Below are positions 9,554 through 58,813 of a stretch of DNA of 64,000 nucleotides, in pieces (within the stretch, counting starts at the first letter, position 1; each line of letters starts with the position of its first letter). The stretch spans positions 310,001-374,000 of the IMG/VR virus record IMGVR_UViG_3300036715_004471; one strand, given 5' to 3'. Under the pieces are notes generated by a model. That model searched no databases. It was not told the DNA's origin and worked only from the letters and a program-made list of their open reading frames with translations. A program made the translations under genes and the position numbers.

Positions 9554-9805
9554 TCACTTAAGCATTTTACCTAGTAATTTCCCAAACCAAAACGGAAATT
9601 CAGAAATTAATACAAGAATCATTACAAATAAGAAAAAAGGGAACCCCGCAATAGTGCAAATGATGTTATCAATATCGATATCTTGGATTAAACCAAGATG
9701 CTGACCTTTTGATGCAAGATATCCTTTGTATATGGCTTTGATTGTAAAACCGCCAAATAATACTATCATGGCAAAAAAGAAATAAATAACAAGGGCTATT
9801 AACAT
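9554..9805 (-). CDS. small membrane protein
   Basis: Two hydrophobic segments. Confidence 0.6.
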   Translation of the reverse strand: MLIALVIYFFFAMIVLFGGFTIKAIYKGYLASKGQHLGLIQDIDIDNIICTIAGFPFFLFVMILVLISEFPFWFGKLLGKMLK

Positions 9806-10785
9806 TATTTGCTTAACTCCAACATTCTTTCAATAGAAATCCTTGCTTGATTCATTAGTTCATCTGGCAAGAAAATTTGTGGTTGTAGATTTTTCAATGA
9901 AAGATAAACTTTTTCCAAAGTATTTTTCTTCATGAAAGGACATTCATTGCAAGCACAATTTGCTTCTGGGGGCGCAGGAATAAATGTCTTATCAGGCGCT
10001 GCCTTTTGCATCTGATGTAAAATACCAGATTCAGTGGCTACAATGAATTCTTTATTTGGATCTTTGATTGCAAAGTTTAGAATACCAGTAGTAGATCCAA
10101 TATAATCAGCCATCTTTAAAATGGATTCTTCACATTCAGGATGAGCTAATACCAAAGCTTTTGGATAACGCTCTTTAAGACCAATGAGTTTTCTTTCACT
10201 GAATGTTTCATGAACAATACAGCTGCCCTGCCAAAGGACCATATCTCTTTTTAGTTTTTTCGATAAGAATGCCCCTAAATTCTTATCGGGGGCGAAAAGA
10301 ATAGTCTTATCTTTTGAAACAGCATTAACTATTCTTTCAGCATTAGAAGAAGTGCAAATATAATCTGAAAGTGCTTTTACTTCTGCGGAACAGTTAATAT
10401 AACTAATCGTTACAAGATTAGGATCCACTTCTTCTTTTAGTTTTTCTTGTAACTTAAAGAGGTCTGAGGCTTTACAACCATCTGCTAATGAACAGCCGGC
10501 TTCTAAATCAGGAAGCACTACAATTTTACTAGGATTGAGTATTTTGGCGGTTTCAGCCATGAAATGAACCCCCGCAAAACAAATAACATCGGCTTGAGTC
10601 TTCGCCGCCTCCTGCGAAAGCTGCAAAGAATCACCAATAAAATCTGCTATGTCTTGTATTTCCGAGTCTTGATAGTAATGTGCCAAAATAACAGCATTAC
10701 GTTCTTTCTTGAGTTTTAGAATTTCTTTTTCTAAATCCAAAGAAGGATCAATGTGATCCTGATCATACATTTTTAGATGTTTCAT
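9805..10785 (-). CDS. nadA: quinolinate synthase A
   Basis: [62 protein letters not shown]. Start moved to 10785 because the track's extension lies inside a tRNA. Confidence 0.95.
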
Positions 10786-10811
10786 TTCAAACTTTCCATT
10801 CTTATTTTTAG

Positions 10812-10884
10812 CTCCCCTGGAGGGATTCGAACCCACGCAAAACCGTTTTAGAGGCGGCTGCTCTAACCACTGAGCTACAGGGGA
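10812..10884 (-). tRNA. amber suppressor tRNA (anticodon CUA)
   Basis: TCCCCTG TA GCTC AGTGGTTA GAGC A GCCGC CTCTAAA ACGGT TTTGC GTGGG TTCGAAT CCCTC CAGGGGA G. U33 precedes CTA (10849-10851); U1-A72, G73; followed by CTA, not CCA. Confidence 0.85.
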
Positions 10885-10902
10885 ATTCCAGATAACTTTA
10901 TA

Positions 10903-11247
10903 TCATGATCCTCTCAAAGCTAGAGGAAGTCTACTACAAAGTCTCCTAGTGTCGGAGCCCGGAGCGAGGGCAATTGCAGTAATTTGATTATCAACATCCG
11001 GCTCTCTAAAGATGGAATGTTTGATATTTTTTTTACCCGCCTCTTCAATTAAAGAATTCAATTCTCGCTCATTTTGAACCGAAAGAAAACCCAAATAATT
11101 GGAATTTTCAAACCATTCTTTGTTAATATCAGGGTGCTCAAAGGCGAATTGCACAGCAGCATGAATGCTCTGTACGCCCTGATAACCTGGACTCATATCT
11201 GCACGAGTAACAATGTACAACTTATCACCTGATTTAATCTACGACAT
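10903..11247 (-). CDS. Pth2-like peptidyl-tRNA hydrolase with in-frame TAG at codon 3
   Basis: KLYIVTRADMSPGYQGVQSIHA...FREPDVDNQITAIAL..LPL is PTH2-like. SD AAGGAG (11255-11260), 7 nt spacer, then ATG TCG TAG ATT AAA TCA GGT GAT AAG TTG TAC in frame with the tracked ORF. Confidence 0.8.
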
Positions 11248-11827
11248 GATCAATCTCCTTAAATAATTTCTGGCAAATTTGTTCGCCCTTCTTGTTAATT
11301 TGCTTCAACTTAATCTTAAAAGATGTGGAATCAATACCACCAAACATTTCAGCATTAGCATGAATCTCAGCCAAACCAACAATTAGCAATGTAATTGCTT
11401 CTTTATGTTTGATAAATTCATCAATCTCATTAGACTTCATGGTATGAATCATCATATCCATTCCAATAAGATTAGCTACAGTTGGTGAGCCGCCCAAAGA
11501 TAACCAAGTTTGGCGAGACTTTTCTGCATGATTTGGAAAATGTCTTTTTCCATTTTCATCAACAATCATACAATAAGGCTTACCGCAATCATGGAAGATC
11601 GTATATTCTTCGATAATATCTTTAGGCAAAAGATTTTTGAGAAGATTGTGTCTGAATTCCAGACACCAATTAGGAAGCTTAAATCCATCAGGCGATGATT
11701 TGCCTTCCAAAATATCAATCAATTTGAATGTGTAATTTTTAACAGCAATGCCGTGCTCATAAACTGATTGAGTATCAGTCTGAGAACAGTTTTGCATATC
11801 ATGAATTAAGCTATCTTTCTACCACAT
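11234..11827 (-). CDS. HD-domain protein with in-frame TAG at codon 3
   Basis: SVYEHG...FHDCGKP...HFPNHAEKS resembles the HD domain of CCA-adding/poly(A) polymerase and Pnkp-associated proteins. SD GAAGGA, 7 nt spacer, then ATG TGG TAG AAA GAT AGC TTA ATT CAT GAT ATG CAA in frame with the tracked ORF. Confidence 0.78.
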
Positions 11828-11854
11828 AATCATATCCTTCTTTCATATATCAGA

Positions 11855-12489: not shown

Positions 12490-13227
12490 ATGACGGCTCA
12501 ACTAGTACCAACAGTAAAAACATCTTACTCTCCAGAGGAGTTAATCAAAAGCTTCATTGAAGGCTGGAAAAAACAATTTGGCACCATGCCAAATAAAAAA
12601 TCAATAGCCATATTGTGGGCTCAAAACAGAATTGAAACTGGAGCGACCTCGGCTATGTGGAATAATAATATAGGGAATGTTAAGTACGTTCCTAGTAATA
12701 ACCCAGAGAGTGATAATAATATTCAATACATGATGTTATCTAATGTCTGGGAAATCATCAACGGAAAAAAGGTTGTTTTCCAACCACCTCACAAAGCAAC
12801 TTGGTTTAGAGCATTTCCAACTTTAACAGACGGAGTTGCTTTTCATTTAGATTTCTTGAAAAATCATAGATACAAAAAAGCTTGGGCAGCCATCGAAGCT
12901 GGTAGTCCTTCCAACTTTGCGCATCTCTTAAAAGAAGCTGGTTATTACACTGCTCCAGAAGAAGATTATTCTAAAGCTATAGCTCTATTTTTTATGAGAT
13001 TTATAAGAGATGATACTTATGAAAAAGTATTAGCCTCTTTGGTAGCACCAAAACCAACTACTATTGTAAATCATGTTGAAACTATAACGGTAGAAACACC
13101 AATAGCACCACTGCCAGTGGAGCAACCAACGAGTGTTACTCCTATTCCGACAGCAGTGCCTCCACCAAATAAATCATTGTGGCAAACTATTATTCAATTT
13201 ATTTTGGGATTATTTAAAAGAAAATAA
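12490..13227 (+). CDS. putative endolysin (glucosaminidase/FlgJ-like lysozyme fold)
   Basis: AQ..IETG, NNNIGNVK, FRAF, LKEAGYYTA; Pro/Thr linker; C-terminal amphipathic helix SLWQTIIQFILGLFKRK; GGAGG RBS. Confidence 0.7.
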   Translation: MTAQLVPTVKTSYSPEELIKSFIEGWKKQFGTMPNKKSIAILWAQNRIETGATSAMWNNNIGNVKYVPSNNPESDNNIQYMMLSNVWEIINGKKVVFQPPHKATWFRAFPTLTDGVAFHLDFLKNHRYKKAWAAIEAGSPSNFAHLLKEAGYYTAPEEDYSKAIALFFMRFIRDDTYEKVLASLVAPKPTTIVNHVETITVETPIAPLPVEQPTSVTPIPTAVPPPNKSLWQTIIQFILGLFKRK

Positions 13228-13603
13228 TCAATCCTGAATGATTGTTAATGAAATCATCAAGAGATGAATAGCTTTCAATTATTCTATAATAAAGAGGTCC
13301 CAAAACTCCATTTGGGACCTTATTTCTTGGATTATGATAATATCTTCTTACGGAAAAAGAATTAAAAGATGGTTTGAATATTATTTTGAACCAGAAAAAA
13401 TCTTTTACGGTTTTAGCAAAAATAACTTCACATTGTTCTTTTGTTTTATTAGCATGCCCACAGGCAGCCTCAATACAATCATCAGAACAACTGAATGTAA
13501 CATCGTTAATTGACATATTACCAAAACGCTTTATTACTGAAGTATCTATTAACGATTTTATCAACTTTGAACATCGTATCGATTGATACAATTCCTTCAT
13601 CAA
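13214..13603 (-). CDS. hypothetical protein with C-terminal F-x motif
   Basis: Ends HSGLIIFF. Confidence 0.55.
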   Translation of the reverse strand: MMKELYQSIRCSKLIKSLIDTSVIKRFGNMSINDVTFSCSDDCIEAACGHANKTKEQCEVIFAKTVKDFFWFKIIFKPSFNSFSVRRYYHNPRNKVPNGVLGPLYYRIIESYSSLDDFINNHSGLIIFF

Positions 13604-13814
13604 AATTTTTCCACTCTACATGATACTTATTATTTGTTAATCGAATTAACCTTAGTGACCAGATTGATGAGGTTGTAGAGTTTCTTTTATAATGCAGTGC
13701 TCCATAATAAGACTTATCTGGAGCAGAACTTTTTTCTATTACAAAGTCTCTATTATCAACTGATAAATTCATCTTACCAGTAGAAAAAATTTCTATCGCT
13801 ACTTTAAGATCCAT
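13518..13814 (-). CDS. hypothetical protein with C-terminal F-x motif
   Basis: Likely start MDLKVAIE (track extension overlaps the tmRNA); ends RYFSNKAFW. Confidence 0.6.
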   Translation of the reverse strand: MDLKVAIEIFSTGKMNLSVDNRDFVIEKSSAPDKSYYGALHYKRNSTTSSIWSLRLIRLTNNKYHVEWKNFDEGIVSIDTMFKVDKIVNRYFSNKAFW

Positions 13815-13843: not shown

Positions 13844-14197
13844 TGGTGGACCTGCGTGGTACCGCCCCACGGTCTTCCATAATCCAGATTAAAAATCGTT
13901 CACAAGTTTAGCCAATTTCAATGTAATTGACAACATCTTATTGAATTCGCTCAATAAAACTATCCCTGTTGATTTCACATTAACATCCGAGAACAAAGTT
14001 AACATTATCTTTTGTGGGTTGATATTCTCTTGACTACCAAAGATATCTTATCTAGAGAACATCCTTAAGCAGCTAGTGCTAGAGGAGCAGATGCATTATC
14101 GTTTGCAACTATACGTTAATCGTTAATTTAAGCCAATGACGATCATTTGGCACTTGCTTTTCAATGTTTCATACAGAATCGAATCTATTTCAAGCCC
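13844..14197 (-). ncRNA. ssrA: tmRNA
   Basis: 5' GGGCTTGAAATAGATTCGA pairs with 3' CAGGTCC-A-CCA (G3:U70 Ala identity). Resume context TAGTT-GCA; tag ORF ANDNASAPLALAA*; about 354 nt. Confidence 0.93.
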
Positions 14198-14750: not shown

Positions 14751-14824
14751 TGGAGCTGAAAGTCGGTACTGCCCCGACATCTTCTCGTTACGAGGGAGAT
14801 ATTCTACTATTGAACTACATCAGC
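14751..14824 (-). tRNA. tRNA-Thr(CGU)
   Basis: GCTGATG..TCTCC-CTCGTAA-CGAGA..GTCGG GGCAGTA CCGAC..TCAGC T CCA; non-canonical T-loop. Confidence 0.8.
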
Positions 14825-15463
14825 TTTTATATCATTCATTATTTCTTTTTCTAATTTGTATCTTTTTGCTCTTTCAAATCTACCATTACCTTTATTACGA
14901 CCCTTAAAAGTTGGAGATATTGAGTCGCAATTATTACATATAACTCTCAGATTAGATAACTTATTATTGTATGAATTACCATCGATATGATCTAATACTA
15001 ACGGAATCGTAACGCCTAACCATTCTGATAAATTACAAGATTGGCATTTATTTTCACATAATTCAATAAGGTATTTTTTGCCTATAAGATTATTTGAAGA
15101 GTTATCAACTCCAGTTAATAACAATTCTTTTTTAGTTTCTGACCACCAAAAATTAGTCATGCATTGTTTAGAACAGTATTTATGCTGTCCTTTTTCAATG
15201 AGCTTCATAGTGCACCACAAACAATTATCTAATACTATATGCGAAGTGCCACCTCTTACAAAATTATTATAAGTCGCTCCACAACTTTGACTACAAAAAT
15301 CATTTGCTCTTTTATCATATGTAATGATTTTTTGACAATGTTTACATTGTTTAGCATTTTGATTGTATTTATCAATTCTAGAATTTTTGCGAATACTTGC
15401 TGTTTTGGCAGCAGCTAATCCACCTAATTTACCAGCATCACTATAACTAGATTTATCTCTCAT
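14807..15463 (-). CDS. HNH homing endonuclease inside the tRNA-Thr cluster
   Basis: FCSQSC/YCSKQC Zn repeats, LVLDHIDGNSYNNKLSNLRVICNNCD; the stop lies inside tRNA-Thr(CGU). Confidence 0.85.
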   Translation of the reverse strand: MRDKSSYSDAGKLGGLAAAKTASIRKNSRIDKYNQNAKQCKHCQKIITYDKRANDFCSQSCGATYNNFVRGGTSHIVLDNCLWCTMKLIEKGQHKYCSKQCMTNFWWSETKKELLLTGVDNSSNNLIGKKYLIELCENKCQSCNLSEWLGVTIPLVLDHIDGNSYNNKLSNLRVICNNCDSISPTFKGRNKGNGRFERAKRYKLEKEIMNDIKADVVQ

Positions 15464-15501
15464 ACAAAGTATATATCAGCTATTTTTATGATTTGGTATT
15501 A

Positions 15502-15580: not shown

Positions 15581-15655
15581 TGGAGCCCCATGCCAGGTAT
15601 TGCACCGGCGTCATCTCGTTACAAGTGAGATATTCTGCTTTTGAACTAAAGGGGC
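15581..15655 (-). tRNA. tRNA-Thr(UGU)
   Basis: GCCCC..TCTCA-CTTGTAA-CGAGA..TGCAATA T-loop..GGGGC T CCA. Confidence 0.78.
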
Positions 15656-16420: not shown

Positions 16421-17200
16421 TTAGAAACTATCCCTTCTAAAGATATCAGCTCCATTCTTAAAAATGTTGGATAAGAATGATTGGTCTTTCGTAAAGATGG
16501 GAAGGTCACTATTAATTGACCATTTATTCTTCATTACATCTCCAACGACTTTGGGGACCTTGTAAGCTGCGACCCCACGTCGGAAGGCGATGGGATATTC
16601 GTGAAAGTCTATATTACATTCTTGTTGTAATAAATCAACTTTTTCATCAATACTTAAACCACCCAGCATATCTTTAATAGTATTTCTATTGTGAGTTTTA
16701 AGCAATTCATAGAAACATGCCGATTGAATTGATAAATGAAAATTTTGCTGTTGCTTATACACGAATGTATTGATTGCTTCTGCTATGGTTGGAACGGGAA
16801 ATACTTGCGAAGTAAATAAACCATCACCCATTAAATTCAAACCAGAAGATACATTATTGAAATGCAATGTAGCAATAGATGAAGTTATAGAGCAAATTTT
16901 CTGTAACTTGTTATCATACCATGGAGAAGTATCTATTCCTTGATCATTCCTTGAAATGATTACAATTTCATCATTGAATTGAAATCCAAATAATGATCCT
17001 TCAATTTCTGAACATAATTTCAACATGGTTGAAACCATACTCTCAGAGAACTTTTCACAGTAAGGTTTGTCTAATAGAGATGTCAATTTAGAAAAAGCTC
17101 GTCCATTGATTACAATAACAATAGGCACACGACTTAAAATACGAAAATCGGTTGAATCCATGTATGACTCAACCCTATCTTTGAGCTTAGATGATGACAT
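16421..17200 (-). CDS. tRNA(His) guanylyltransferase Thg1-like protein
   Basis: LKDRVESY, VINGRAFSKLT, FQFNDEI, WYDNKLQKICS, FRRG. Confidence 0.85.
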   Translation of the reverse strand: MSSSKLKDRVESYMDSTDFRILSRVPIVIVINGRAFSKLTSLLDKPYCEKFSESMVSTMLKLCSEIEGSLFGFQFNDEIVIISRNDQGIDTSPWYDNKLQKICSITSSIATLHFNNVSSGLNLMGDGLFTSQVFPVPTIAEAINTFVYKQQQNFHLSIQSACFYELLKTHNRNTIKDMLGGLSIDEKVDLLQQECNIDFHEYPIAFRRGVAAYKVPKVVGDVMKNKWSINSDLPIFTKDQSFLSNIFKNGADIFRRDSF

Positions 17201-17219
17201 ACATTTCAATATACCTTAG

Positions 17220-23976: not shown

Positions 23977-24142
23977 TAACTTTTCTCTTTCTAATCACTA
24001 GAACTTCTGGAAATTTTTGTTCTGATTCTGTAGAGCTATTGGTAAATCCACATTTTCTACATTTTACTTTTTTATTGATGGTTTTTTCATTCCCAACAAT
24101 ATCAACTTCTCCAGAACATAATTTACATTTTAATAGCTTCAT
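23963..24142 (-). CDS. small Zn-ribbon protein
   Basis: MKLLKCKLC...CRKCG. Confidence 0.6.
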   Translation of the reverse strand: MKLLKCKLCSGEVDIVGNEKTINKKVKCRKCGFTNSSTESEQKFPEVLVIRKRKVNAQN

Positions 24143-25028
24143 GTGTTGCGCTTTCCACAATGGTTTGTCTGAAAGCATCCATATCTACTTGAATAGATAT
24201 TTCTGCATTAGGGACGTCTGAACGACGAGAGCCCCACTCTCCTTTGTGTCTATATAGCTCTACAAGTTCAAACTTGCAAATATCTTTATTTATTGCAACA
24301 CAAGCCGCTAATGGATCATGAAAAGCTTTACCACTAGGTTTTTTCTTCAAATAAAAACTCATGCCATCAATTAATAAATCTAATCCTAGATTTTTGCCTT
24401 TGTGGTTAACCATAAACTCATGCATGATTTGATCGTATACAACACCATGACATACATTTTTGGATACAAAAATTCTCTGTAATATCTTGTCAGAAGATAA
24501 GACTTTCAATGCAGAATCTACGTCTCCATTTAGGTTAAATGTTGGACAAGTAATTTTACCTTTGAATTTCTCTAAAACCAATTCTGGTGGCATAATGTTG
24601 TCTCCAGCAAACCCACCTTGTACAACAATTTTAGAAATTACAGCATCTTCGTTCTTACGAAGCAATGCGCCTATGTTACCCAGCGCGGCGCCGCAGACAA
24701 TTGTCAATTCAGGATATTCCTGAAGAGCATTGTATAAAATCTCATTCCCAGTGCCATCGGGTTCGGCTGGTGGAATTTTTCCAAGCCAATTAAAATGAAA
24801 TGCAGAAACGCATTCCTTATCGTGATCCTTGTTCTTGGATCCGACAGGAATGCGTTTCTGCATCTTTGCTAATATATGTTTTACAACACCAATTTGGTGT
24901 TTGGTTCCTGGAGTTACAGTGACCGCAACTAGATTTACTCTATCATGTGTAGATAACATGCATAAAGTAAAAACATCATCTGGGTCAGCGGTCTCCATGT
25001 CTAATGCTATGTTAATTTTGTTCTTCAT
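24123..25028 (-). CDS. IU-type nucleoside hydrolase family protein
   Basis: DMETADPDD, GGFAG, TFNLNGD, FHDPLA. Confidence 0.85.
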   Translation of the reverse strand: MKNKINIALDMETADPDDVFTLCMLSTHDRVNLVAVTVTPGTKHQIGVVKHILAKMQKRIPVGSKNKDHDKECVSAFHFNWLGKIPPAEPDGTGNEILYNALQEYPELTIVCGAALGNIGALLRKNEDAVISKIVVQGGFAGDNIMPPELVLEKFKGKITCPTFNLNGDVDSALKVLSSDKILQRIFVSKNVCHGVVYDQIMHEFMVNHKGKNLGLDLLIDGMSFYLKKKPSGKAFHDPLAACVAINKDICKFELVELYRHKGEWGSRRSDVPNAEISIQVDMDAFRQTIVESATHEAIKM

Positions 25029-25054
25029 AAGTAGAAGATACTATAACAGTCTCA

Positions 25055-25714: not shown

Positions 25715-26380
25715 TCAAGAGCTTATCTTAGACAATTTATTCTTGACAATTTCTTGTTCCTTCCAGTGTTCTGTAGTTTGTACATGATTAGCACGCACAC
25801 ACTTCATTACACAAGAGGAAAAATTTCTATCATCAAAAGCATCTTGAATCCTAACAACTACACCCTCTCTTATATCGCCACAAGCGGAAGATGCAATCAT
25901 GAAAGATTCCACAATTTCTTGTAATTCTTTTTCCGAAGAAATACTACCCTTAAAAAGAACAGGAACCGTGGGCACATGAATTTCATCCGCCCATAGCTCG
26001 ACTTCCTCCCAACACGCCCATTGCATATTAGAAAGATCGCGTACATTAAATAACAAAAAATAGCTAGGTAGTAGATCATATTTAATGGAATGTAAAGCAA
26101 AGCACCATTCACCGAATAATTGGATTCCTTGAGGGATTTTCCATTTCAGAGAGGCATGTAAAGCTTTCAATCCATCAAATGATGGGTGTGAGGGAGGACC
26201 CGAATGAGTTCTAGCAAAACAACCATCTGTTTCAAGAGAAGTATTGCTACCATCCATTTTCTCTGTAATAACAATAGGATTACCAATTAACCTAGACATA
26301 TCTGTCGCAATTTTATCATCATTGGTACAGCCTTTTGACCATGGAAAATGTGGCGTCCTATTATATTTGGGCGAGTCCAT
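25715..26380 (-). CDS. RNA ligase (Rnl2/DRB0094-like)
   Basis: KYNRTPHFPWS, TEKMDGSN (motif I), FGEW, REGVVVR, KCVRANH. Confidence 0.85.
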   Translation of the reverse strand: MDSPKYNRTPHFPWSKGCTNDDKIATDMSRLIGNPIVITEKMDGSNTSLETDGCFARTHSGPPSHPSFDGLKALHASLKWKIPQGIQLFGEWCFALHSIKYDLLPSYFLLFNVRDLSNMQWACWEEVELWADEIHVPTVPVLFKGSISSEKELQEIVESFMIASSACGDIREGVVVRIQDAFDDRNFSSCVMKCVRANHVQTTEHWKEQEIVKNKLSKISS

Positions 26381-26885
26381 TTTCATTCTCAACTTTCTTA
26401 TGGGGGCATGAATCAAAATTAGTTAATGCGAAATGACAATTAGCACACAATATTCGAAGAGAATATTTGGTCGGATTTTTCACGATATCTCTTAGATATC
26501 TAAGAGATTTGCCAACTTCTTTTCTATGTTTCCATCCGTCTCTGTTAACATGATCTATTTGCAAAAATTCTATTGTTGTCTCTGCACAACATTCACATTT
26601 GCCGCCCAAAAATTCAATCACTTTATATTTGTATTTCAAACGCCATTTCTTACGAGATTCACGATGTTTCTCTCTAGAAGTTTCATTGGTTTTCCACCTA
26701 TTTCTAACTTCTTTGGCATTAGGATTTTCTGATATGTATTTTTTACTAGATTTGCGGGCAGCTATTAAACAAATCTCACATTTAGTTTTATTTGACAAAC
26801 TTTCATTCTTGCCGCAATTTATACACAAACCTTGCGATTTTAATCTTTCACGACGCTCTTTTGATAATTCAGAAGCAGTTTTCAT
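26361..26885 (-). CDS. HNH-like endonuclease
   Basis: LGGKCECC..FLQIDHVNRDG..ILCANCH. Confidence 0.8.
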   Translation of the reverse strand: MKTASELSKERRERLKSQGLCINCGKNESLSNKTKCEICLIAARKSSKKYISENPNAKEVRNRWKTNETSREKHRESRKKWRLKYKYKVIEFLGGKCECCAETTIEFLQIDHVNRDGWKHRKEVGKSLRYLRDIVKNPTKYSLRILCANCHFALTNFDSCPHKKVENENGLAQI

Positions 26886-28301: not shown

Positions 28302-29525
28302 TTAGTTAGAAAGTTCTAACATTTTGTCTAGGAAAATGTTTGACCAAGTTCCATTTTTCTGATTCTTCATGATAAAGTCCTTCATTGAAGACGCCTTACC
28401 ATCAAACATTTGAAAGAAAGGAGAAGTCCATAAGATTTTATGGTTTGAGGTCACCATCACAGCAAATGTCTTTTTATCACCTCTATTGAGATGATTTGAA
28501 CAATTCAACAAGATTTGGTAGATCTCATCATATCTCTTAATCATGTGATTAAGATTATTCTTCATCTTCAAAAGGTTAGACACAACTTCTTTTGGTAGAA
28601 GAGGCAACATGTCGTCATCCTTTTCTAACAAGATAGCTTCCATACAATTTCTTGGCGAAGAAGAAATATGATCCTTCATTTTATGAGCCAAAACGTAAGC
28701 TACGCTCTTGATTTTAACTCTCTTGAAGTTCTTATCTCTAACTATAACACCTTCCATTTTTGAAGGGTCTTGCGAATTAATGTAAGCAATCATATCATCA
28801 AATTTATCGAATTTGAATTCTTGCGCCAGAGGAACAGGAAAATCCGAAACAATAAATTCCTTTAATGACTTGCTGTTTCTTGCACCCAATAATACAATCG
28901 AGTATTGCTCGTAAGCAACAACAATTCTGTTATATGGAGTCATCAATTCGAAACAATATGTTACATCTCTATCCAAATCAGCAGTCAAGTCCGCAAATGA
29001 TACTCCTAGGGCAGAATCGCATGCAGCCTCAAACAAACTTCTAAAAGTATGAATACCATTATCCATTACAATATTTGCATCAGGTGAGCTTCTTGTTGCT
29101 GCACACCAAGCACCATCGAAAGGATCAAAATATACGATAATTAAAGAACCATCATATTTCGTTTGAATAACGGTTTCTGAATCTGCAAAATCAACATTAG
29201 CCGCCGCCGCCATTCCATAGTTGAAGAAACGGAAGAATGGACAAGCCAATACCACAGTTTCACCAGGAACAATATCATCATAACATACCTTACCATTTTG
29301 GATAGTAGAATGAAGAATAAAATTCGTGCCAGCAGGCGTAGATAGAATCAATCCTCGACACTCTTGTGCCAAAAGATCTGATTCCTTAGATTCCAATTGA
29401 TCATAATTTAATGACCACTTGTGACCAAGTTGGGAGAAAGAAGCATACACTCCGTGCTGCTCAGCTAACTCCTTGAATGATTTGGTTTTTAGAAATTCCT
29501 GAACTAACAACATTATTTTCTCCAA
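28302..29525 (-). CDS. T4 Rnl1-like RNA ligase
   Basis: ECRGLIL, PFFRFFNYG, TKYDGSL, YCFELMTPYNRIVV, EGVIVRD, VKIKS..Y. Confidence 0.88.
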   Translation of the reverse strand: MEKIMLLVQEFLKTKSFKELAEQHGVYASFSQLGHKWSLNYDQLESKESDLLAQECRGLILSTPAGTNFILHSTIQNGKVCYDDIVPGETVVLACPFFRFFNYGMAAAANVDFADSETVIQTKYDGSLIIVYFDPFDGAWCAATRSSPDANIVMDNGIHTFRSLFEAACDSALGVSFADLTADLDRDVTYCFELMTPYNRIVVAYEQYSIVLLGARNSKSLKEFIVSDFPVPLAQEFKFDKFDDMIAYINSQDPSKMEGVIVRDKNFKRVKIKSVAYVLAHKMKDHISSSPRNCMEAILLEKDDDMLPLLPKEVVSNLLKMKNNLNHMIKRYDEIYQILLNCSNHLNRGDKKTFAVMVTSNHKILWTSPFFQMFDGKASSMKDFIMKNQKNGTWSNIFLDKMLELSN

Positions 29526-32200: not shown

Positions 32201-33136
32201 TTAGAAATCGCCCCAAGCAACTTGGAAGCAAGTCAATCCCAATTTATCACGCCACAATTCACATACTTGTGTGCGATCATCCAACACAAGCAATACATTG
32301 TATTTTCCACGAATACGTGATTCATAAATTTCTTCCTTGATAAGCGCATCTTTACGGAAGTCTTGTGACTTTCTCATAAACAATTGATACTCATCAATTC
32401 CATCACAATATGCCTCAATAAAACTTCTCGTTTGAGACTCGTACTTATCCTCTCTACCGGAGCAGAAAATGATTTTGTAACCAGCCTTGTAATAAAGCTT
32501 TAATGATTCAATTACCGGAATGTTAGGAAGATCGTTTTCGCACTGTGATGCATCATAAGGATTTCTTCCATTCAACAAAGCTAAAGTTCCATCCAAATCA
32601 CACAAAACCGCCATAGGCAGATTTGGATCAATTCGTGGTGCTTCAACTCCAGAATCTTGAAATGCTGATGCTAAAGTGAAAATCTGAACACGTGGTTTAT
32701 AGAACTTGAACTGCTTACCGCCCGAATCCTTCCACCACTTCTTGATAACATTTTCACCCACAGAAGCCTTACCATCTCTCTTAGAGTCTCTGGCAATAGC
32801 CTCTTCCAAGTCAACAAAGAATTCCTTCTCGAATACTTGAATGTCTTTATTTAAAGACTTGGCAATCTTACAAACATCATCGAAATGACGTCTATTGAGA
32901 TTCAAGTTATCAATAATAACGTTCTTGCCTCTTTTCAAGGCATCACGAATCAAGTAATTTCTCGTATCAGTGATCATCTTTTCGTAATCAGCTGACCATA
33001 CGGAACCATTCATCATAGCACGAAGGTCATCATTATTTACTCGGACCCAATTCGACGGGTCCTTAGCAATTTCTGCTTTTGCCCAAGTTGACTTACCAGA
33101 ACCAGGGATTCCTACCGTTAGAATAACTTTTAACAT
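32201..33136 (-). CDS. pseT: polynucleotide 5'-kinase/3'-phosphatase (T4 PseT-like)
   Basis: GIPGSGKSTW, NNDDLR, DLDGTLA, SGR, LDDRTQV..W..GLTCFQV. Confidence 0.92.
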   Translation of the reverse strand: MLKVILTVGIPGSGKSTWAKAEIAKDPSNWVRVNNDDLRAMMNGSVWSADYEKMITDTRNYLIRDALKRGKNVIIDNLNLNRRHFDDVCKIAKSLNKDIQVFEKEFFVDLEEAIARDSKRDGKASVGENVIKKWWKDSGGKQFKFYKPRVQIFTLASAFQDSGVEAPRIDPNLPMAVLCDLDGTLALLNGRNPYDASQCENDLPNIPVIESLKLYYKAGYKIIFCSGREDKYESQTRSFIEAYCDGIDEYQLFMRKSQDFRKDALIKEEIYESRIRGKYNVLLVLDDRTQVCELWRDKLGLTCFQVAWGDF

Positions 33137-33149
33137 AATAACCTACAAT

Positions 33150-34405: not shown

Positions 34406-35338
34406 TCATTTGAAGAATTCTGCTTGGTCTACATACTGAAATCCACAACGACTTGCGAATGTTTTATCGGTCGTCATGTCGCCTACCATAATGGTATCTT
34501 GACGTTTCAATTTATGTTTCATAATGAATTCTACACCAAGACCGTTCATCGGCTTTCTGCAATAGCAGGAAATCGGCGCCGACTGATGGGGACAGAATCT
34601 ATATTCAATATCTAATCCCAATTGTTTATTAGTATAATCAAACAGTTCGTGGCATTTTTCAAGAGTTAGTTCTCCCTTATGCACTCCGCTCTGATTTGAA
34701 ACGCCTAACAGTAAATATCCTTTGTCTTTGTAGGACTGCAAAACTTCTTTGCATTTGTCCTTAACCTTGACATGACTTATATCAGTCGGATATTTATCAT
34801 TACCACCAATGCATTCACGAAGTGTACCATCGTAATCAACAATGATTGCTTTGTTAGTAAACTCCGGATTATCCACACGAGTAAACTTGATTACATCAAC
34901 TTTGGAAAAACCTTCCTCGATGGTAGGTTTCTGAAATTCTTTCTTGTATTTAAACAAGACAGTTGGTGGAAAAATGTTGGGATGTTTGCTCTTTTTAATT
35001 TCATCGGGAGAAAGGAATTTCCCCGAAATATTAATCATTCTTTGAACAAAATTGAATTGTGCATCTTCGATAGAAGTATCTACCAATTTGCATACAATGC
35101 TTGTTTTGTATTTTTTGCACAAATCAATAAATGGTTTGCGTACTTCTACTGTTGGAAATAAATTATCCAAGATCACATCGTCTTGATCTTGGAGCATTTT
35201 TTCAAACTTAGGTAAGAGACCAGCAATTGTGCCACCTTCTGTATCTCTATTTAGAACAATAACTTCGGCACCCAATAAACTTTTTGTGACTGTACTTTTC
35301 CCGGAACTGGGAAAGCCACAAACCATAACAACAGCCAT
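34406..35338 (-). CDS. AAA_33 kinase + HAD-IIIA phosphatase (second PNKP-like enzyme)
   Basis: GFPSSGKS; DYDGTL, SNQSG, CPH..CYCRKP, VGDMTTD. Confidence 0.85.
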   Translation of the reverse strand: MAVVMVCGFPSSGKSTVTKSLLGAEVIVLNRDTEGGTIAGLLPKFEKMLQDQDDVILDNLFPTVEVRKPFIDLCKKYKTSIVCKLVDTSIEDAQFNFVQRMINISGKFLSPDEIKKSKHPNIFPPTVLFKYKKEFQKPTIEEGFSKVDVIKFTRVDNPEFTNKAIIVDYDGTLRECIGGNDKYPTDISHVKVKDKCKEVLQSYKDKGYLLLGVSNQSGVHKGELTLEKCHELFDYTNKQLGLDIEYRFCPHQSAPISCYCRKPMNGLGVEFIMKHKLKRQDTIMVGDMTTDKTFASRCGFQYVDQAEFFK

Positions 35339-35354
35339 TTTATTTCACCTAATA

Positions 35355-38402: not shown

Positions 38403-39503
38403 TCAAACACCTTCCGACAAAGAACGATCAACCAACTGAATACACAGTTGATCCAACTTATCTTTATCAGGATGTTTTGGAAGAATATCTGATGTATTAT
38501 ACAATTCGTTCAGAGTAACTTCTTCACGTTCAGCGAACTCAATCAACTGATCATAGGTCCACGCTCCGTTACGAATTGAGAGTAATTCTTCTCGGTCAGG
38601 TCGTTTAACAATAACCTTTCCAGTCGTCAAAATCTCTCTACACATACGAATCAATCTTACTAGATGATAAGCATGTTTAGTATCATATCCAAACTTCTCT
38701 TCCAATTCTGCTCTGGCGGGATTACGGGTTTTCTTCCAGTTAATGAACTGATCCCACTCCCTCTTAGCAGAAGTATAGGCTCGCTCTCTTTGCATGATTT
38801 GAATAAAGTTATCACTCAAACCAATTTTTCTAGCAGCAGCCATCCAGTGATCATCGGTAGTGATTTTCAATTCTGCAATCATCTCTGCCATTACAGAACG
38901 AATACCAATTTTGGTTGATTCAGGCAAATCATCCATAAAATCAAATTGAAATCTATCCAATTCTTTCTGGACTTCTGCCTGGGCAGCCATTAATTGGTCC
39001 GCAGGAATCAATGTTTGCTCCGGCAGCCCTAATTCCGAACGAGTCGGCGGCTTGCTAGGAGGAGACATAATCCAACGCTTATGTAATTTTATTCTATGAA
39101 GCTGTGAAATTGCATAACCAGTCATAGTATGTTTTACTTTTTTAGATAGGAATAAATTTCTATTTTCAATTAATTTTTCGCCTATAGGTGAAATATAGAT
39201 GATATCATTTGGATCAACAAATAGCATTTCTAAACAATTTGGATTACAGTCTGCCGCAAGTTTGAAAAACTTAGTAAGTTCATAAATAACAGTATCGGGA
39301 TCATGTAATTCCGCCTGTTCGAAATTCTTCATAAAACCAAAATAATACTCTTTGGGAGGAATACATATTCCTTTGAAATCTTCATCTGAAGATTCGGTAT
39401 TAGTCCCATAAGCCCTACTACCATGCAAAGCAACATAAATAGCCTGATTATTGATCCATTTAATTCCTGAATCAAATTTTTCAAAAAAAGTAGGAAGTTT
39501 CAT
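38403..39503 (-). CDS. pol-beta superfamily nucleotidyltransferase (YcgL/RlaP-like)
   Basis: HGSRAYGTNTESSDEDFKG, NPNCLEML, GYDTKHAYHLVRL, LLSIRNG. Confidence 0.85.
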   Translation of the reverse strand: MKLPTFFEKFDSGIKWINNQAIYVALHGSRAYGTNTESSDEDFKGICIPPKEYYFGFMKNFEQAELHDPDTVIYELTKFFKLAADCNPNCLEMLFVDPNDIIYISPIGEKLIENRNLFLSKKVKHTMTGYAISQLHRIKLHKRWIMSPPSKPPTRSELGLPEQTLIPADQLMAAQAEVQKELDRFQFDFMDDLPESTKIGIRSVMAEMIAELKITTDDHWMAAARKIGLSDNFIQIMQRERAYTSAKREWDQFINWKKTRNPARAELEEKFGYDTKHAYHLVRLIRMCREILTTGKVIVKRPDREELLSIRNGAWTYDQLIEFAEREEVTLNELYNTSDILPKHPDKDKLDQLCIQLVDRSLSEGV

Positions 39504-39548
39504 AAGGTTACTCTTAATTACATGTCAATATTATGATATACATATATC

Positions 39549-40253: not shown

Positions 40254-40521
40254 CAAATGTCCAAATTCTTCTATTAATTTTTTCATTGTTTTAAAAATCA
40301 GGTTTTGGAATAAAGCCCGCCTCTAATGCAAAATATTGAAACCAATCATTTTGATATTGATCCCATTTAAAGCACAAATTACCATTTTCATCAAGACCCC
40401 AAATCCATGTTCCATCATTTTTGGGATTTGTTGAAGTTATCCTTATTTTTACATCTAGCTCATGAACTTTATTGTAAAAATAAGGATCAGAAAATTCTTT
40501 TATAATATTTTTATACTTCAA
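40239..40521 (-). pseudogene. hypothetical protein with +1 frameshift before a C-terminal F-x motif
   Basis: Frame 0 ends GAT TTT TAA. Removing one T of the T5 run (40293-40297) gives PDFKTMKKLIEEFGHLLVFI*. Confidence 0.55.
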
Positions 40522-45174: not shown

Positions 45175-45482
45175 TTAATTTTTAATCTCATCAGGGTCTT
45201 CCTCAAAAATCAATTCATTATCTTTGTATTTTTGAAGAATATCTTGATGAATTTTCCAAATATCTCTACCAAAAGACAATGCCCCGGCTGTCCACCGTAT
45301 TCTAAGAATTAGGGATTCGGGACATTCCACTTTTTTAATTCCTCACTTAGCCATAGTCCAGCATAACAAACCTCTCGTATGATGGGAGAGACAGATACTT
45401 GTGGATAAAGCTGATTATCTTGTTCAAGAATTTTAGACCAACGTTCTATATCTTCGTTAGCGATCGACTCCGGTCTCGACAT
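45175..45482 (-). pseudogene. hypothetical protein split by a -1 frameshift at A_AAA_AAG
   Basis: MSRPES...EELKK, then the -1 frame continues VECPESLILRIRWTAGALSFGRDIW...DEIKN* and fills the gap to 45175. Confidence 0.6.
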
Positions 45483-46674
45483 GGGCATCCTCAATAATTA
45501 TTCGGCAGAATTTCTTCTTGCCTTTTCTTACAATTAATTCGTCATCATTACTGAGACGACTAATATGTAAGGTGGGATCAGTAATTGTAATATCATTAAT
45601 CGAAATACCTCGACCATTAATAAGATTTCTTGCATCAGATTTTGACTTAGCAAAATTACATCTTACTAACAAATCAAGTATTGAAAGATTATCTTGAATT
45701 GAGATTGCCTCAATATCAATTCCCTCTTTCTTCTCAAACAAGGCTTCTGCCTGCCTGAGTGTCGTCACCGCTTCCAATTCACCATGAACCATTTTAGTTA
45801 ATTCAAAAGCCAATCTCTTTTTGGCAGAATTGATTTCATCAATAGTAGAAAATGGAATATTATCAATTTCCTCTACTGAGAGTAGGGTTAATAGTTTGAA
45901 ACAATTCATAACTTCACTATCTGGTAAGTTTCTCCAGAATTGAAAGAAGTCAAAAACTGAAGTCAGATTTTTATCTAACCAAACGGCTCCCTTTTCAGTT
46001 TTACCCATTTTCTGACCGGCAGAATTAGTTAACAATGTTATTGTTAATCCAAACGCTTCTTGTTCAGATTTCTTATGAATTAGATCAATTCCTGCCAAAA
46101 TATTAGACCATTGATCATCTCCACCAATCTGAAGCACACAATTATGCCGCCTATTTAACTCGAAGAAGTCAAATGCTTGCATCAACATGTAGTTGAACTC
46201 AAGAAATGATAATCCATTTTCCATACGAGACTTGAAACAATCAGCTCTTAACATGTTGTTAACAGAAAAATGTCTACCAATCTCTGAAATGAATTGCAAG
46301 AAATTTATATCTCGAAACCAGCCAATATTGTTAATAATACTGACATCGCCAATAATATTGTGAATTTGTTTGGCAATTTCTGTTGAATTAGACATAGTTT
46401 GACCTAAATCTAATGCTTGTCTCATAGAGCTTTTGCCACTAGGATCGCCAATACTAGCCGTAGCTCCACCAACTAACATAATTGGATTATGTCCAACATT
46501 TTTAAGACGTAGGGCGGTAACAATTTGTAGCAAATGTCCTACATGCAAACTTTGTGCTGTAGGATCAAATCCAATGTAAAAACTGATCTTCTCATTATCT
46601 AAAAGATGTTTAATCTTATTATGATTTGTTGATTGTTTAATCAATCCCCTCTGAATCAGTTCCTCGAATATCAT
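45457..46674 (-). CDS. tyrS: tyrosyl-tRNA synthetase
   Basis: YIGFDPTAQSLHVGH, GDPSGK, YMLMQAFDF, QIGGDDQWSNI, KMGKT, S4 domain. Confidence 0.96.
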   Translation of the reverse strand: MIFEELIQRGLIKQSTNHNKIKHLLDNEKISFYIGFDPTAQSLHVGHLLQIVTALRLKNVGHNPIMLVGGATASIGDPSGKSSMRQALDLGQTMSNSTEIAKQIHNIIGDVSIINNIGWFRDINFLQFISEIGRHFSVNNMLRADCFKSRMENGLSFLEFNYMLMQAFDFFELNRRHNCVLQIGGDDQWSNILAGIDLIHKKSEQEAFGLTITLLTNSAGQKMGKTEKGAVWLDKNLTSVFDFFQFWRNLPDSEVMNCFKLLTLLSVEEIDNIPFSTIDEINSAKKRLAFELTKMVHGELEAVTTLRQAEALFEKKEGIDIEAISIQDNLSILDLLVRCNFAKSKSDARNLINGRGISINDITITDPTLHISRLSNDDELIVRKGKKKFCRIIIEDAHVETGVDR

Positions 46675-46963
46675 TGTCTTTTTCACTTTCAGTGTTTGCA
46701 ATTTCTGCTAGTACATCACCATGACAAGATAATGGATGACACCAACATCCTAATATTTTACCTTTTAATTCATTCTTAGCCGCTTCAAGCAACCAAGGCG
46801 TATTCATGATGTAATTACGATAGTATTCAATAGCTTCTTCTCTCGAATCTACTTTATAGATCGCAAGTGTGCCTGGTAGATGGGAGAAGGGATTGCCAAA
46901 TTTCGAAGGTCTACCTATGTAAATATCATATTTGTCTTTTTTACAATGCACAACTTTACACAT
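46637..46963 (-). CDS. DUF4326 protein
   Basis: YIGRPSKFGNPF...LGCWCHPLSCHGDVL. Confidence 0.85.
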   Translation of the reverse strand: MCKVVHCKKDKYDIYIGRPSKFGNPFSHLPGTLAIYKVDSREEAIEYYRNYIMNTPWLLEAAKNELKGKILGCWCHPLSCHGDVLAEIANTESEKDNDIRGTDSEGID

Positions 46964-57304: not shown

Positions 57305-58804
57305 TTATTTTACCTGAGTTTCAAATTCAATGATGTAACGTAAGCAATGTTGTTGTTCGGGTCCGGTTGGACTGTAAGTAATCAACTCATCGTTGTATAC
57401 TGCGCTTCCAGCTTTAGCGAAAACGGAATGATTAGGGGCAATGCTCTTTTTGGAATAAAAATGTGAGTTATTCACTATTTTTTGATTACCAAATGCCACG
57501 TCTCCTAAAAATAGGTAAGCAGTTTTATTACCACCTTGTGCCCAATATGAGCCTTTGACATCGCAGTAATTAATGGATTTGGTGCTATTGGTTGCCCAAT
57601 AAATACCGTCACCATACATAGATCCTGCATGTGCAACGCCTGATGGTCTAATCAAAAGACCTTTGGTAGTGATACCAATCATATTGGCGCGACGAGTTCC
57701 ATGCCAGCCAGGACATACATTGGCTGTTTTATATATTTCTTGCAATTCTTCTGGAACGTCTGGACGGGTTTTGATAAGCTTGGCGTAAACTTCTGAAGGA
57801 GTTTGTTTGCCACATTTCTTGGCAATTTCTTCTGCCACTGAAACAAATCTTTCTTCTTCGTCTTTACGATTAACTTTGAAAATCTTATGAGTTTTTAATT
57901 TACCTAAGAAAGAATGATTTCCAGCTCTGGTGCCATGTAACATGGCATCCAACCATTTCCAAGTTGGAGAATTAGGATCAATATATGCTAGATCGGCATT
58001 CAAAGTTGCATATTGCGAATCAACCGCACTCTTTTTAGACATAACGCTTTGAACATTCTTAGCATCATTGAAAACATCAAGAATATCAAATGCTTTATCT
58101 AATTTATCATCGGAATCCAAACGTAATACATCTGCATTAATTCTGGTATATCCAAAATTGTGTGGAATATTGGAATAATAAGAATTGGTCAATTTGTTCA
58201 ACTCATCTGTATCTGGTTTTTTAGCATGAACAATTTTGCGGGCTTCTTCTAAGATATCTTTGCCTTTACCAATTTGATCAACAGATAATTGACCTAAAGG
58301 ACATTTTTTGGTGTCTAGATTTAATTCAATGAATTCGGCAGTAACTCCGAACCAAGTTCTTACTAGGTCTTGAACTTCTGGATGAAGTTTAGAATCTTCT
58401 TTTACTTCTTCAACTTTAATCCCGACTTTTTGTAAATCAGAAACCGAAACTTTTGACACTTCGATTTTAGATTTACCAACTTCCGATCCTACATCTGCTT
58501 TAACCAACTTGACTTCAACATAACCTTTTTTGACTTTGGATTTGATAATCTTGTCGGATTCTGTTTCAGCATGTGATTGGCTATTGCAAATACGATATTC
58601 CTTTGCAATAGTTCCTCCAACTCTACCATAGTTGGTATAAATTCTAGCCTCTCCACTAGGAGCAATTTGAATTTCCAAATTATAGAACTTATTGGAATTG
58701 TTGACAATATCAGTAAAATTGAGAGTGGTTCTTCTAACCACATCAAAATTATTGGAAAACTTAGGTTCCGCGCCAGCGGAATAAGCAACTAATTTTTCAG
58801 CCAC
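57305..58804 (-). CDS. poly(ADP-ribose) polymerase-like protein (WGR, regulatory and catalytic domains)
   Basis: NSNKFY..YGRVG (WGR); PLGQLS..QI, YYSNIPHNFG (regulatory); WHGTR, MYGDGIYWA..KSINY, NDELITY (H-Y-E triad). Confidence 0.9.
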   Translation of the reverse strand: MAEKLVAYSAGAEPKFSNNFDVVRRTTLNFTDIVNNSNKFYNLEIQIAPSGEARIYTNYGRVGGTIAKEYRICNSQSHAETESDKIIKSKVKKGYVEVKLVKADVGSEVGKSKIEVSKVSVSDLQKVGIKVEEVKEDSKLHPEVQDLVRTWFGVTAEFIELNLDTKKCPLGQLSVDQIGKGKDILEEARKIVHAKKPDTDELNKLTNSYYSNIPHNFGYTRINADVLRLDSDDKLDKAFDILDVFNDAKNVQSVMSKKSAVDSQYATLNADLAYIDPNSPTWKWLDAMLHGTRAGNHSFLGKLKTHKIFKVNRKDEEERFVSVAEEIAKKCGKQTPSEVYAKLIKTRPDVPEELQEIYKTANVCPGWHGTRRANMIGITTKGLLIRPSGVAHAGSMYGDGIYWATNSTKSINYCDVKGSYWAQGGNKTAYLFLGDVAFGNQKIVNNSHFYSKKSIAPNHSVFAKAGSAVYNDELITYSPTGPEQQHCLRYIIEFETQVK

Positions 58805-58813
58805 ATTAACCTC

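Follow-up and report, generated by a model that had tools for sequence, protein, structure and literature searches.

How can two neighbouring genes of a phage be expressed when each of them meets an in-frame stop at its third codon? The question is raised by a stretch of 64,000 nucleotides (nt) of the virus record IMGVR_UViG_3300036715_004471 (positions 310,001-374,000), which as a whole is called the window here and whose own numbering is used throughout. In this stretch a gene for an HD-domain protein runs into a gene of the peptidyl-tRNA hydrolase 2 family (Pth2-like), both of them begin with a Shine-Dalgarno (SD) sequence, an ATG, one sense codon and an amber codon (TAG in the DNA, UAG in the message), and the pair is followed by a transfer RNA (tRNA) gene whose anticodon, CUA, is that of an amber suppressor. 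These genes, and a transfer-messenger RNA (tmRNA) gene described further on, all lie on the minus strand. The elements of the cassette are the following:

11822..11840, minus strand: ribosome-binding site and leader of the HD gene, with GAAGGA at 11840-11835, a 7-nt spacer, ATG at 11827-11825 and TGG at 11824-11822 (read from the sequence)
11819..11821, minus strand: amber gate 1, the in-frame TAG at codon 3 of the HD gene (read from the sequence and present in independent assemblies)
11234..11827, minus strand: full-length HD-domain gene, of 197 sense codons if the TAG is read through, with stop TAA at 11234-11236
11242..11260, minus strand: ribosome-binding site and leader of the Pth2-like gene, with AAGGAG at 11260-11255, a 7-nt spacer, ATG at 11247-11245 and TCG at 11244-11242, overlapping the 3' end of the HD gene
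11239..11241, minus strand: amber gate 2, the in-frame TAG at codon 3 of the Pth2-like gene (read from the sequence and present in independent assemblies)
10903..11247, minus strand: full-length Pth2-like gene (Pfam PF01981), with stop TGA at 10903-10905
10812..10884, minus strand: tRNA with anticodon CUA (10884..10811/10812 in ARAGORN; 61.9 bits with the Rfam tRNA model; cloverleaf fold)

Past its TAG, the HD frame continues with AAA GAT AGC TTA ATT CAT GAT and then the ATG at 11797, in frame with an open reading frame (ORF) of 187 amino acids (11234..11797), and the Pth2 frame continues with ATT AAA TCA GGT GAT AAG TTG, in frame with the ORF 10903..11220. The HD stop codon TAA overlaps the Pth2 leader, the two genes sharing 14 nt, and the tRNA starts 18 nt past the Pth2 stop on the same strand. 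An earlier, sequence-only reading of the window had given these SD, ATG and TAG positions and both frames, correctly to the base, and had claimed that both enzymes need UAG decoding to reach full length, a claim that the sequence comparison of relatives supports. From that comparison it seems likely that both genes start at the upstream SD-ATG, that their codon-3 UAG is decoded, probably by the adjacent tRNA-CUA, and that their output is in this way coupled to suppression.

The first point to settle is whether the stops are real. Four independent public metagenome runs, from microbial mat, sediment and aquatic samples, yielded contigs in which both TAGs are unchanged, and an assembly error is thereby excluded; one diverged strain shows 27 differences over 720 bases, yet keeps the TAG at 11819-21. 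The region as such has no match among the GenBank phages by megablast, and a profile scan of cellular genomes found no relative of the HD protein, which has more than 1,200 homologues in the databases. Relatives were sampled as 80 IMG/VR loci (L001-L080), mostly on contigs of 100-570 kb, together with stretches of cultured phages; the HD proteins of the fetched loci are 37-100% identical to that of the window. Removal of duplicates left 72 distinct loci, mostly huge-phage contigs, and the Pth2-like gene was found in 45 of them.

The gates recur widely in this sample. The HD gene has an in-frame TAG somewhere in 58/72 distinct loci: early in 49, where it lies 5-16 codons upstream of a conserved Met; internal only in five; and at the N-terminus of a Pth2-HD fusion, as its single TAG, in four. 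The early position is occupied by TGA in two loci and there is no HD gate in 12. The two TGA loci, L039 and L045, are sisters (ML-TGA and MS-TGA), and a tRNA-UCA is absent from the 4 kb on either side of them. The Pth2-like gene has an early TAG in 35 of the 45 loci that possess it, and its layout of an ATG, one to three codons and a TAG is repeated among the relatives. At least one of the two genes is gated in 62/72 loci, and neither of them in the other 10. A tRNA-CUA was looked for in the 4-kb flanks, and 44 of the 80 loci have one there, always on the same strand as the genes; the linkage of early TAG and suppressor, predicted from the window, is thus found in the relatives. Five cultured phages carry an in-frame TAG in HD or Pth2, namely Arash (host Salmonella), XacN1 (Xanthomonas), RsoM2USA (Ralstonia), pT24 (Tenacibaculum) and GAP32 (Cronobacter). 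Written across the gate, the leaders read ML-UAG-NKHW for the Pth2 of Arash, MK-UAG-TIKAM for XacN1, MKS-UAG-ISKEE for RsoM2USA and MK-UAG-ITKNS for pT24. A known suppressor tRNA is present in four of the five, RsoM2USA, pT24, GAP32 and Arash (labelled tRNA-Phe in the GenBank record of Arash, where ARAGORN reads the anticodon CUA), and for XacN1 no tRNA was found within the 5.5-kb stretch read, which is only part of its genome.

Could such a distribution arise without any function of the stop? According to one explanation, which we consider unlikely, a phage that carries a suppressor tolerates TAGs, these become fixed by hitch-hiking in the genes linked to it, and their only role is that of an addiction that makes the phage keep the tRNA. 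The HD and Pth2 genes are indeed tightly linked to tRNA-CUA, some loci are gate-free, and any role of the gate is conjectural. Yet the whole genome is inherited together with the tRNA, while the pattern recurs in two families only. A maximum-likelihood tree built from the HD proteins, with a total branch length well above one substitution per site, shows the early TAG throughout, at the same N-terminal spot, with scattered losses. Some lineages without it have a TAG elsewhere in HD: near codon 105 in L028, at codon 42 in L065 and L078, and at codon 34 in L080 and GAP32, those at codons 34 and 42 belonging to one clade and the one near 105 to another lineage; in L025 an internal TAG, at codon 35, accompanies the early one. 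The presence of internal TAGs where the early one is missing argues for selection for having a TAG in HD, beyond one inherited mutation, and the placement of the HD gate has shifted more than once. The TGA that replaces TAG at this spot in two loci is a further point against hitch-hiking.

The base that follows the gates speaks to the same issue. The fourth base of a stop signal, the one directly after the codon, is known to affect termination. Over 82 gates of both families this base is A in 57, G in 17, C in eight and T in none, and after the Pth2 gates only purines occur (A 25, G 8); T follows 32/108 genuine TAG terminators. Although the next amino acid also constrains this base, such avoidance of T, which sets the gates apart from the terminators, is what one would see if selection favoured a context of weak termination.

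The second point is where translation starts. Instead of being read through, the TAGs might end tiny upstream ORFs, with HD made from the ATG at 11797 and Pth2 from the TTG at 11220, perhaps by termination and reinitiation. For this reading, which we judge quite improbable, it can be said that the Met following the HD leader never varies, that an AlphaFold model of the HD protein from that Met (predicted local distance difference test score, pLDDT, of 94) is a complete domain, that the TTG of the window has the SD-like AGGTGAT directly upstream, and that database and GenBank annotations start downstream. The leader, however, evolves as coding sequence: in the codons between TAG and Met, differences at positions 1/2/3 amount to 0.52/0.33/0.62, against 0.39/0.31/0.57 in the gene body. 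There is an ATG one to seven codons upstream of the TAG in 46/49 early-TAG HD loci, and in 45/49 the stretch from the TAG to the conserved Met is free of ATG, GTG and TTG. Upstream of the leader ATG an SD-like 4-mer is present in 26/46 cases, upstream of the conserved internal Met in 1/46, the value for random positions being 16%. Among 33 relatives, the Leu codon at the position of TTG 11220 is TTG in two, TTA in eight, CTN in 19, ATT in two and TTT or TTC in two; because TTG occurs in only 2/33, it is best taken as an ordinary Leu codon and not as a conserved start. The sequence-only reading had maintained that the later starts lack a comparable SD; this does not hold for the TTG of the window, but the comparison of relatives restores the conclusion. 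Gene-caller starts for Pth2 are inconsistent and shortened, and would delete the first beta-strand of the fold.

The relatives without a TAG are informative too. The HD protein of L021 reads M-SKLIND-M where others show TAG-NQLILD-M, and the Pth2 protein of L022 reads M-IKNGDK-LY where others show TAG-IKSGDK-LY, so that in both the ATG stands at the position of the gate. Downstream starts would give no account of the internal TAGs at HD codons 34-105 either. Taken together, these comparisons lead us to infer that the in-frame UAGs lie inside translated sequence, behind a functional ribosome-binding site. Existing annotations suffer accordingly: the HD gene of GAP32 (JN882285) is split into three coding sequences, the Pth2 of Arash (OQ632216) is a 50-aa fragment, the annotated coding sequences of pT24 (LC168164) and RsoM2USA (MG752970) begin at internal Met codons, and some database proteins have been silently translated with TAG as Gln.

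The window itself calls to mind another kind of element. The bar minigenes of phage lambda consist of an SD, an AUG, one sense codon and a stop, and are known to interact genetically with pth. ATG-NNN-TAG stands behind a good SD twice in the window, once before a gene of the Pth type, and the analogy had been drawn from the sequence; a two-codon ORF would then act through peptidyl-tRNA drop-off, tRNA sequestration and an interplay with Pth, and not through readthrough. Both arrangements share the theme of peptidyl-tRNA hydrolase, but the analogy turns out to be weak and this explanation scarcely credible. Bar minigenes are free-standing, whereas here the stop is followed by an in-frame ORF conserved as coding sequence; the leader varies from one to seven codons among relatives and has exactly two in 21/49 HD loci, the codon before the TAG is variable, and some gates are internal.

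The third point is whether these two ambers are only the local sample of a genome in which TAG has been reassigned throughout, as under code 15 in recoded gut phages. A suppressor tRNA is present, the genome is AT-rich (GC 33.6%), and the terminators of its approximately 105 ORFs are TAA in 63, TGA in 41 and TAG in one. Against this very improbable alternative, ORFs of code 11 cover 97% of the window and no genes are split, and an SD-ATG-x-TAG lead is found in the HD and Pth2-like genes only. Four other ORFs with an in-frame TAG upstream (13214..13615, 24123..25040, 40291..40521 and the tyrosyl-tRNA synthetase, TyrRS, at 45457..46707) were rejected as ordinary, there being no SD-ATG before the TAG. 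Likewise, no weight was given to the doublet TAG TAG at the end of ORF 14807..15475 as a device against readthrough, since it lies in the D-arm of the tRNA-like gene 14754..14824.

The same picture is obtained on a wider scale. A pattern of ATG, one to five codons, a stop and at least 80 open codons was counted over 737 kb of the window and related loci, and was found 135 times with TAG, 42 times with TAA and 55 times with TGA, a surplus of TAG that chance does not explain; of the TAG cases, 100 belong to the HD or Pth2 families and the others are mostly singletons. The complete genome of pT24 (234,670 bp) has a single case of ATG-x-TAG before a long ORF, the Pth2-HD fusion, 2.5 kb from the suppressor tRNA, and in that genome TAG ends 33/278 ORFs. 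Across the related loci it ends 76/879, and with these two figures the depletion of TAG cannot be a general trait of gate-bearing phages. In-frame stops are not enriched in late structural or lysis genes; as few structural genes are recognisable in the window, this statement is based on the two genes for tRNA-end enzymes and on pT24. The phage of the window thus appears to use local programmed readthrough with the standard code elsewhere, in line with the local gating suggested at the outset.

What decodes the UAG, and as which amino acid? The likeliest decoder would be the tRNA-CUA encoded downstream. Its acceptor end has U1-A72 and G73 and no encoded CCA, features that we take to resemble tRNA-Gln, after the identity set of the E. 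coli tRNA; its similarity to other phage tRNAs was uninformative on identity. Ten loci (L010-L013, L016, L017, L056, L062, L063 and L067) have two different tRNA-CUA genes close together, for example one of the U1-A72/G73 type and one of the G1-C72/A73 type, which hints at two suppressors of different identities. An initiator-like tRNA-CUA that would start translation at the UAG itself was considered and rejected: the tRNA has neither the C1xA72 mismatch nor GGG/CCC pairs in the anticodon stem, and the distance of the SD suits the upstream ATG. Scans for promoters and terminators around the cassette gave nothing above chance, hence co-transcription of the genes with the tRNA is without support.

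As for the residue inserted, an apparent alternation of TAG with real Gln codons was withdrawn, as the Gln seen at this point in longer HD and Pth2 homologues of the databases comes from gene calling with TAG as Gln, and the contig DNA behind those proteins has TAG. The internal TAG at HD codon 42 of L065 and L078 aligns with the nearly invariant Trp of an LPxW motif (W in 59/71 sequences), so that in these phages the UAG may stand for Trp or for a residue tolerated in its place; another internal HD TAG aligns with a variable column in which Gln is the commonest residue at the DNA level. The residue may therefore differ between lineages. The amber-gated HD-Pth2 fusion of XacN1 (L091) is preceded, at 1.2 kb, by an ORF (870-1313) named glutamyl-tRNA amidotransferase in the record, and further upstream by an NAD+ (nicotinamide adenine dinucleotide) synthetase; a link to the formation of Gln-tRNA is possible, going by the name in the record.

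The products of the gated genes point to the ends of tRNAs. The HD protein has invariant residues H15, H69-D70, H86, H90, D114 and H118 (48 sequences), which fit the metal-ligand pattern of HD proteins, H..HD..H..H..D. It hits no Pfam family at E 0.01, the HD profile (PF01966) included, and in a profile search of the Protein Data Bank reaches E 0.02 at best, to an A-adding enzyme. In structural comparison it comes closest to the C-terminal HD domain of the CC-adding enzyme from Aquifex (3wfq_F 256-448; VIA Z 12.5 over 151 residues, the next matches being at 9.5), Foldseek matches it to O67911 (E 2.3e-3), and its structural neighbours in the ESM Atlas are HD domains of bacterial CCA-adding enzymes, with template modelling (TM) scores of 0.66-0.80 that were computed from the query's top feature match and not from the query. 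By its modelled fold, the protein is a free-standing homologue of the HD domain found in CCA-adding tRNA nucleotidyltransferases, with a predicted phosphoesterase activity, and the assignment of an HD protein of CCA-enzyme type made from the sequence is upheld. Fold and ligand pattern are those of the HD domain of class II CCA-adding enzymes but, at 187-197 amino acids, the protein stands alone without the nucleotidyltransferase head. The CCA-adding enzyme of E. coli has 2',3'-cyclic phosphodiesterase and phosphatase activities. The Pth2-like ORF matches Pfam PTH2 (PF01981) with E 4.9e-8 and 33.6 bits (cut-off 23) over profile positions 3-102 of 115, the alignment beginning at the Leu encoded by TTG 11220, and D8, H20, E73-P74-D75 and T81 are invariant.

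In other phages, the two proteins are fused, and in both orders (L031, L061, L069, pT24, XacN1, L049, L051 and P0055), which argues that HD and Pth2 form one functional unit. All of these fusions except P0055 are recorded with a single early TAG.

With these elements, the proposed mechanism can be set out. Translation of each gene would start at the upstream SD-ATG and one UAG, at codon 3, would have to be decoded as an amino acid by the suppressor in competition with the release factor 1 (RF1) of the host. Where RF1 wins, only a dipeptide would be made; where the suppressor wins, the full enzyme, so that the output of both enzymes would be tied to the UAG-decoding capacity of the moment. An early gate would be cheap, as termination would waste only a di- to octapeptide, and Pth2 may depend on both gates because its start overlaps the HD stop. 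The likely substrates of the products are tRNA 3' ends and peptidyl-tRNA. The purpose that we prefer is a supply of tRNA-end recycling enzymes coupled to suppressor activity, which could clear away what readthrough and drop-off leave behind, in company with the nearby tmRNA; alternatively, the coupling could act as feedback on the suppressor tRNA. A fuller version, in which the cassette is a sensor of nonsense suppression with a feedback circuit, is possible but rather doubtful: the UAG would gauge suppressor against RF1, and the enzymes would act either on the suppressor itself, whose 3' end they would trim or heal or whose aminoacyl or peptidyl form they would hydrolyse, or, together with the phage tmRNA nearby, on the drop-off and non-stop products of suppression.

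The tmRNA and two further RNA genes lie upstream of the HD gene:

13844..14197, minus strand: phage tmRNA, whose tag frame reads ANDNASAPLALAA and then TAA (Rfam RF00023, 65.3 bits, gathering score 47; found by Rfam and absent from the ARAGORN output)
14754-14824, minus strand: tRNA-like gene resembling tRNA-Thr(CGT), in which CCA is encoded and the T-loop is odd (Rfam, 41.4 bits; not in ARAGORN)
15585-15655, minus strand: tRNA-like gene (Rfam, 32.6 bits; not in ARAGORN)

In 15/17 close relatives a tmRNA is found on the strand of HD, 0.7-3.3 kb upstream of it, and in 0/17 distant relatives. From this synteny, which is that of the window's own clade, we infer that the tmRNA belongs to the same functional unit as the cassette; its position suggests a handling of suppression by-products or feedback on the suppressor. 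The window also contains a tRNA and RNA repair island with a Thg1-like guanylyltransferase, RNA ligases of the Rnl2 and T4 Rnl1 types, two polynucleotide kinase-phosphatases (PNKPs), an RlaP nucleotidyltransferase, TyrRS and at least 11 tRNAs. Seven of the protein genes can be listed:

16421-17215, 25715-26422, 28302-29525, 32201-33142, 34406-35344, 38403-39524 and 45457-46707, minus strand: genes of the repair island

A second theme of the minus strand is NAD: quinolinate synthase NadA, whose gene is the next one past the suppressor tRNA, a WGR-PARP_reg-PARP protein, an NAD-dependent DNA ligase and a nucleoside hydrolase (9805-10785, 57305-58813, 62865-63998 and 24123-25040).

Several observations weigh against decoding of the gates by the neighbouring suppressor, or limit what can be made of it. 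The case for readthrough is built from the way in which the sequences have evolved, and the decoder tRNA, the enzyme activities and the purpose of the gate are deduced. No tRNA-CUA is seen within the 4-kb flanks in 29/62 gated loci, where it may lie elsewhere in the genome. The Gln at the gate in database proteins is a translation artefact and so no guide to the residue inserted. The invariance of the Met after the HD leader extends to the TAG-less relatives, and a short, suppressor-independent isoform of HD starting there is conceivable. A prediction of a complex between HD and Pth2 gave a score of 0.00, which is no evidence either way. The 10 loci without a gate in either gene mean that it is dispensable in some lineages, and TAG is a common terminator in pT24, for which reason suppression in that phage must be partial or dependent on context.

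How does the cassette compare with known systems? In the phages of code 15, where TAG is read as Gln, in-frame stops interrupt 26-71% of genes, with an enrichment among structural and lysis genes, and the coding density under code 11 is low (Ivanova 2014; 10.1101/2021.08.26.457843; PMC9523058). The gated phages have in common with them a phage tRNA-CUA that would translate in-frame UAGs in a standard-code host, a proposed post-transcriptional control of the proteins made, an AT-rich composition and, in the window, a depletion of TAG terminators. They differ in that a single codon is concerned, at a conserved N-terminal position, in each of two tRNA-related genes; they are also far apart from one another in sequence, and come from freshwater, sediment and hosts that are pathogens of plants or animals.

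Genes of the translation machinery that carry an early signal whose decoding sets their own expression have long been known. The gene for release factor 2, prfB, is autoregulated by an early in-frame UGA, which its product reads and from which ribosomes escape by a +1 frameshift, and infC is autoregulated through its AUU start codon. The cassette would follow the same principle, with a stop that pits a tRNA against a release factor. Unlike in prfB, escape from the conserved early stop would be an in-frame decoding by a tRNA, and feedback of the products on the UAG is speculative.

The PTH2 of jumbo phages has been described within systems of RNA repair and ribosome rescue (Iyer et al., 2021, PMC7824862). 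The family, the kind of phage and the neighbours (Thg1, RNA ligases, PNKP, tRNAs) are the same as here; that paper contains no in-frame amber, no HD partner or fusion and no link to a suppressor, and the terms "suppressor" and "stop codon" are absent from it. Full-text searches of the literature on phage recoding, huge phages, RNA repair in jumbo phages, RsoM2USA and Arash found no mention of the arrangement either, as had been surmised when it was first noticed. The cassette would thus be a gene-specific form of suppressor-tRNA-dependent phage recoding, new with respect to the literature searched.

Suppressor tRNAs are common in large phages that use the standard code, in which their purpose has been unclear, and at least one conserved set of client genes can now be proposed for them. 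A selected, gene-specific dependence on the suppressor of the phage would be either a step toward full recoding or a stable regulatory device. For two widespread families, with more than 1,200 HD homologues and hundreds of Pth2 homologues that are mostly truncated or split, the annotation is corrected, and the two proteins are linked as one unit that would act on tRNA 3' ends. Because cultured phages carry the gate (Arash, XacN1, RsoM2USA, pT24 and GAP32), its mechanism is directly testable. If the reading of the cassette as a sensor were true, a standard-code phage would keep readthrough at a set level during infection.

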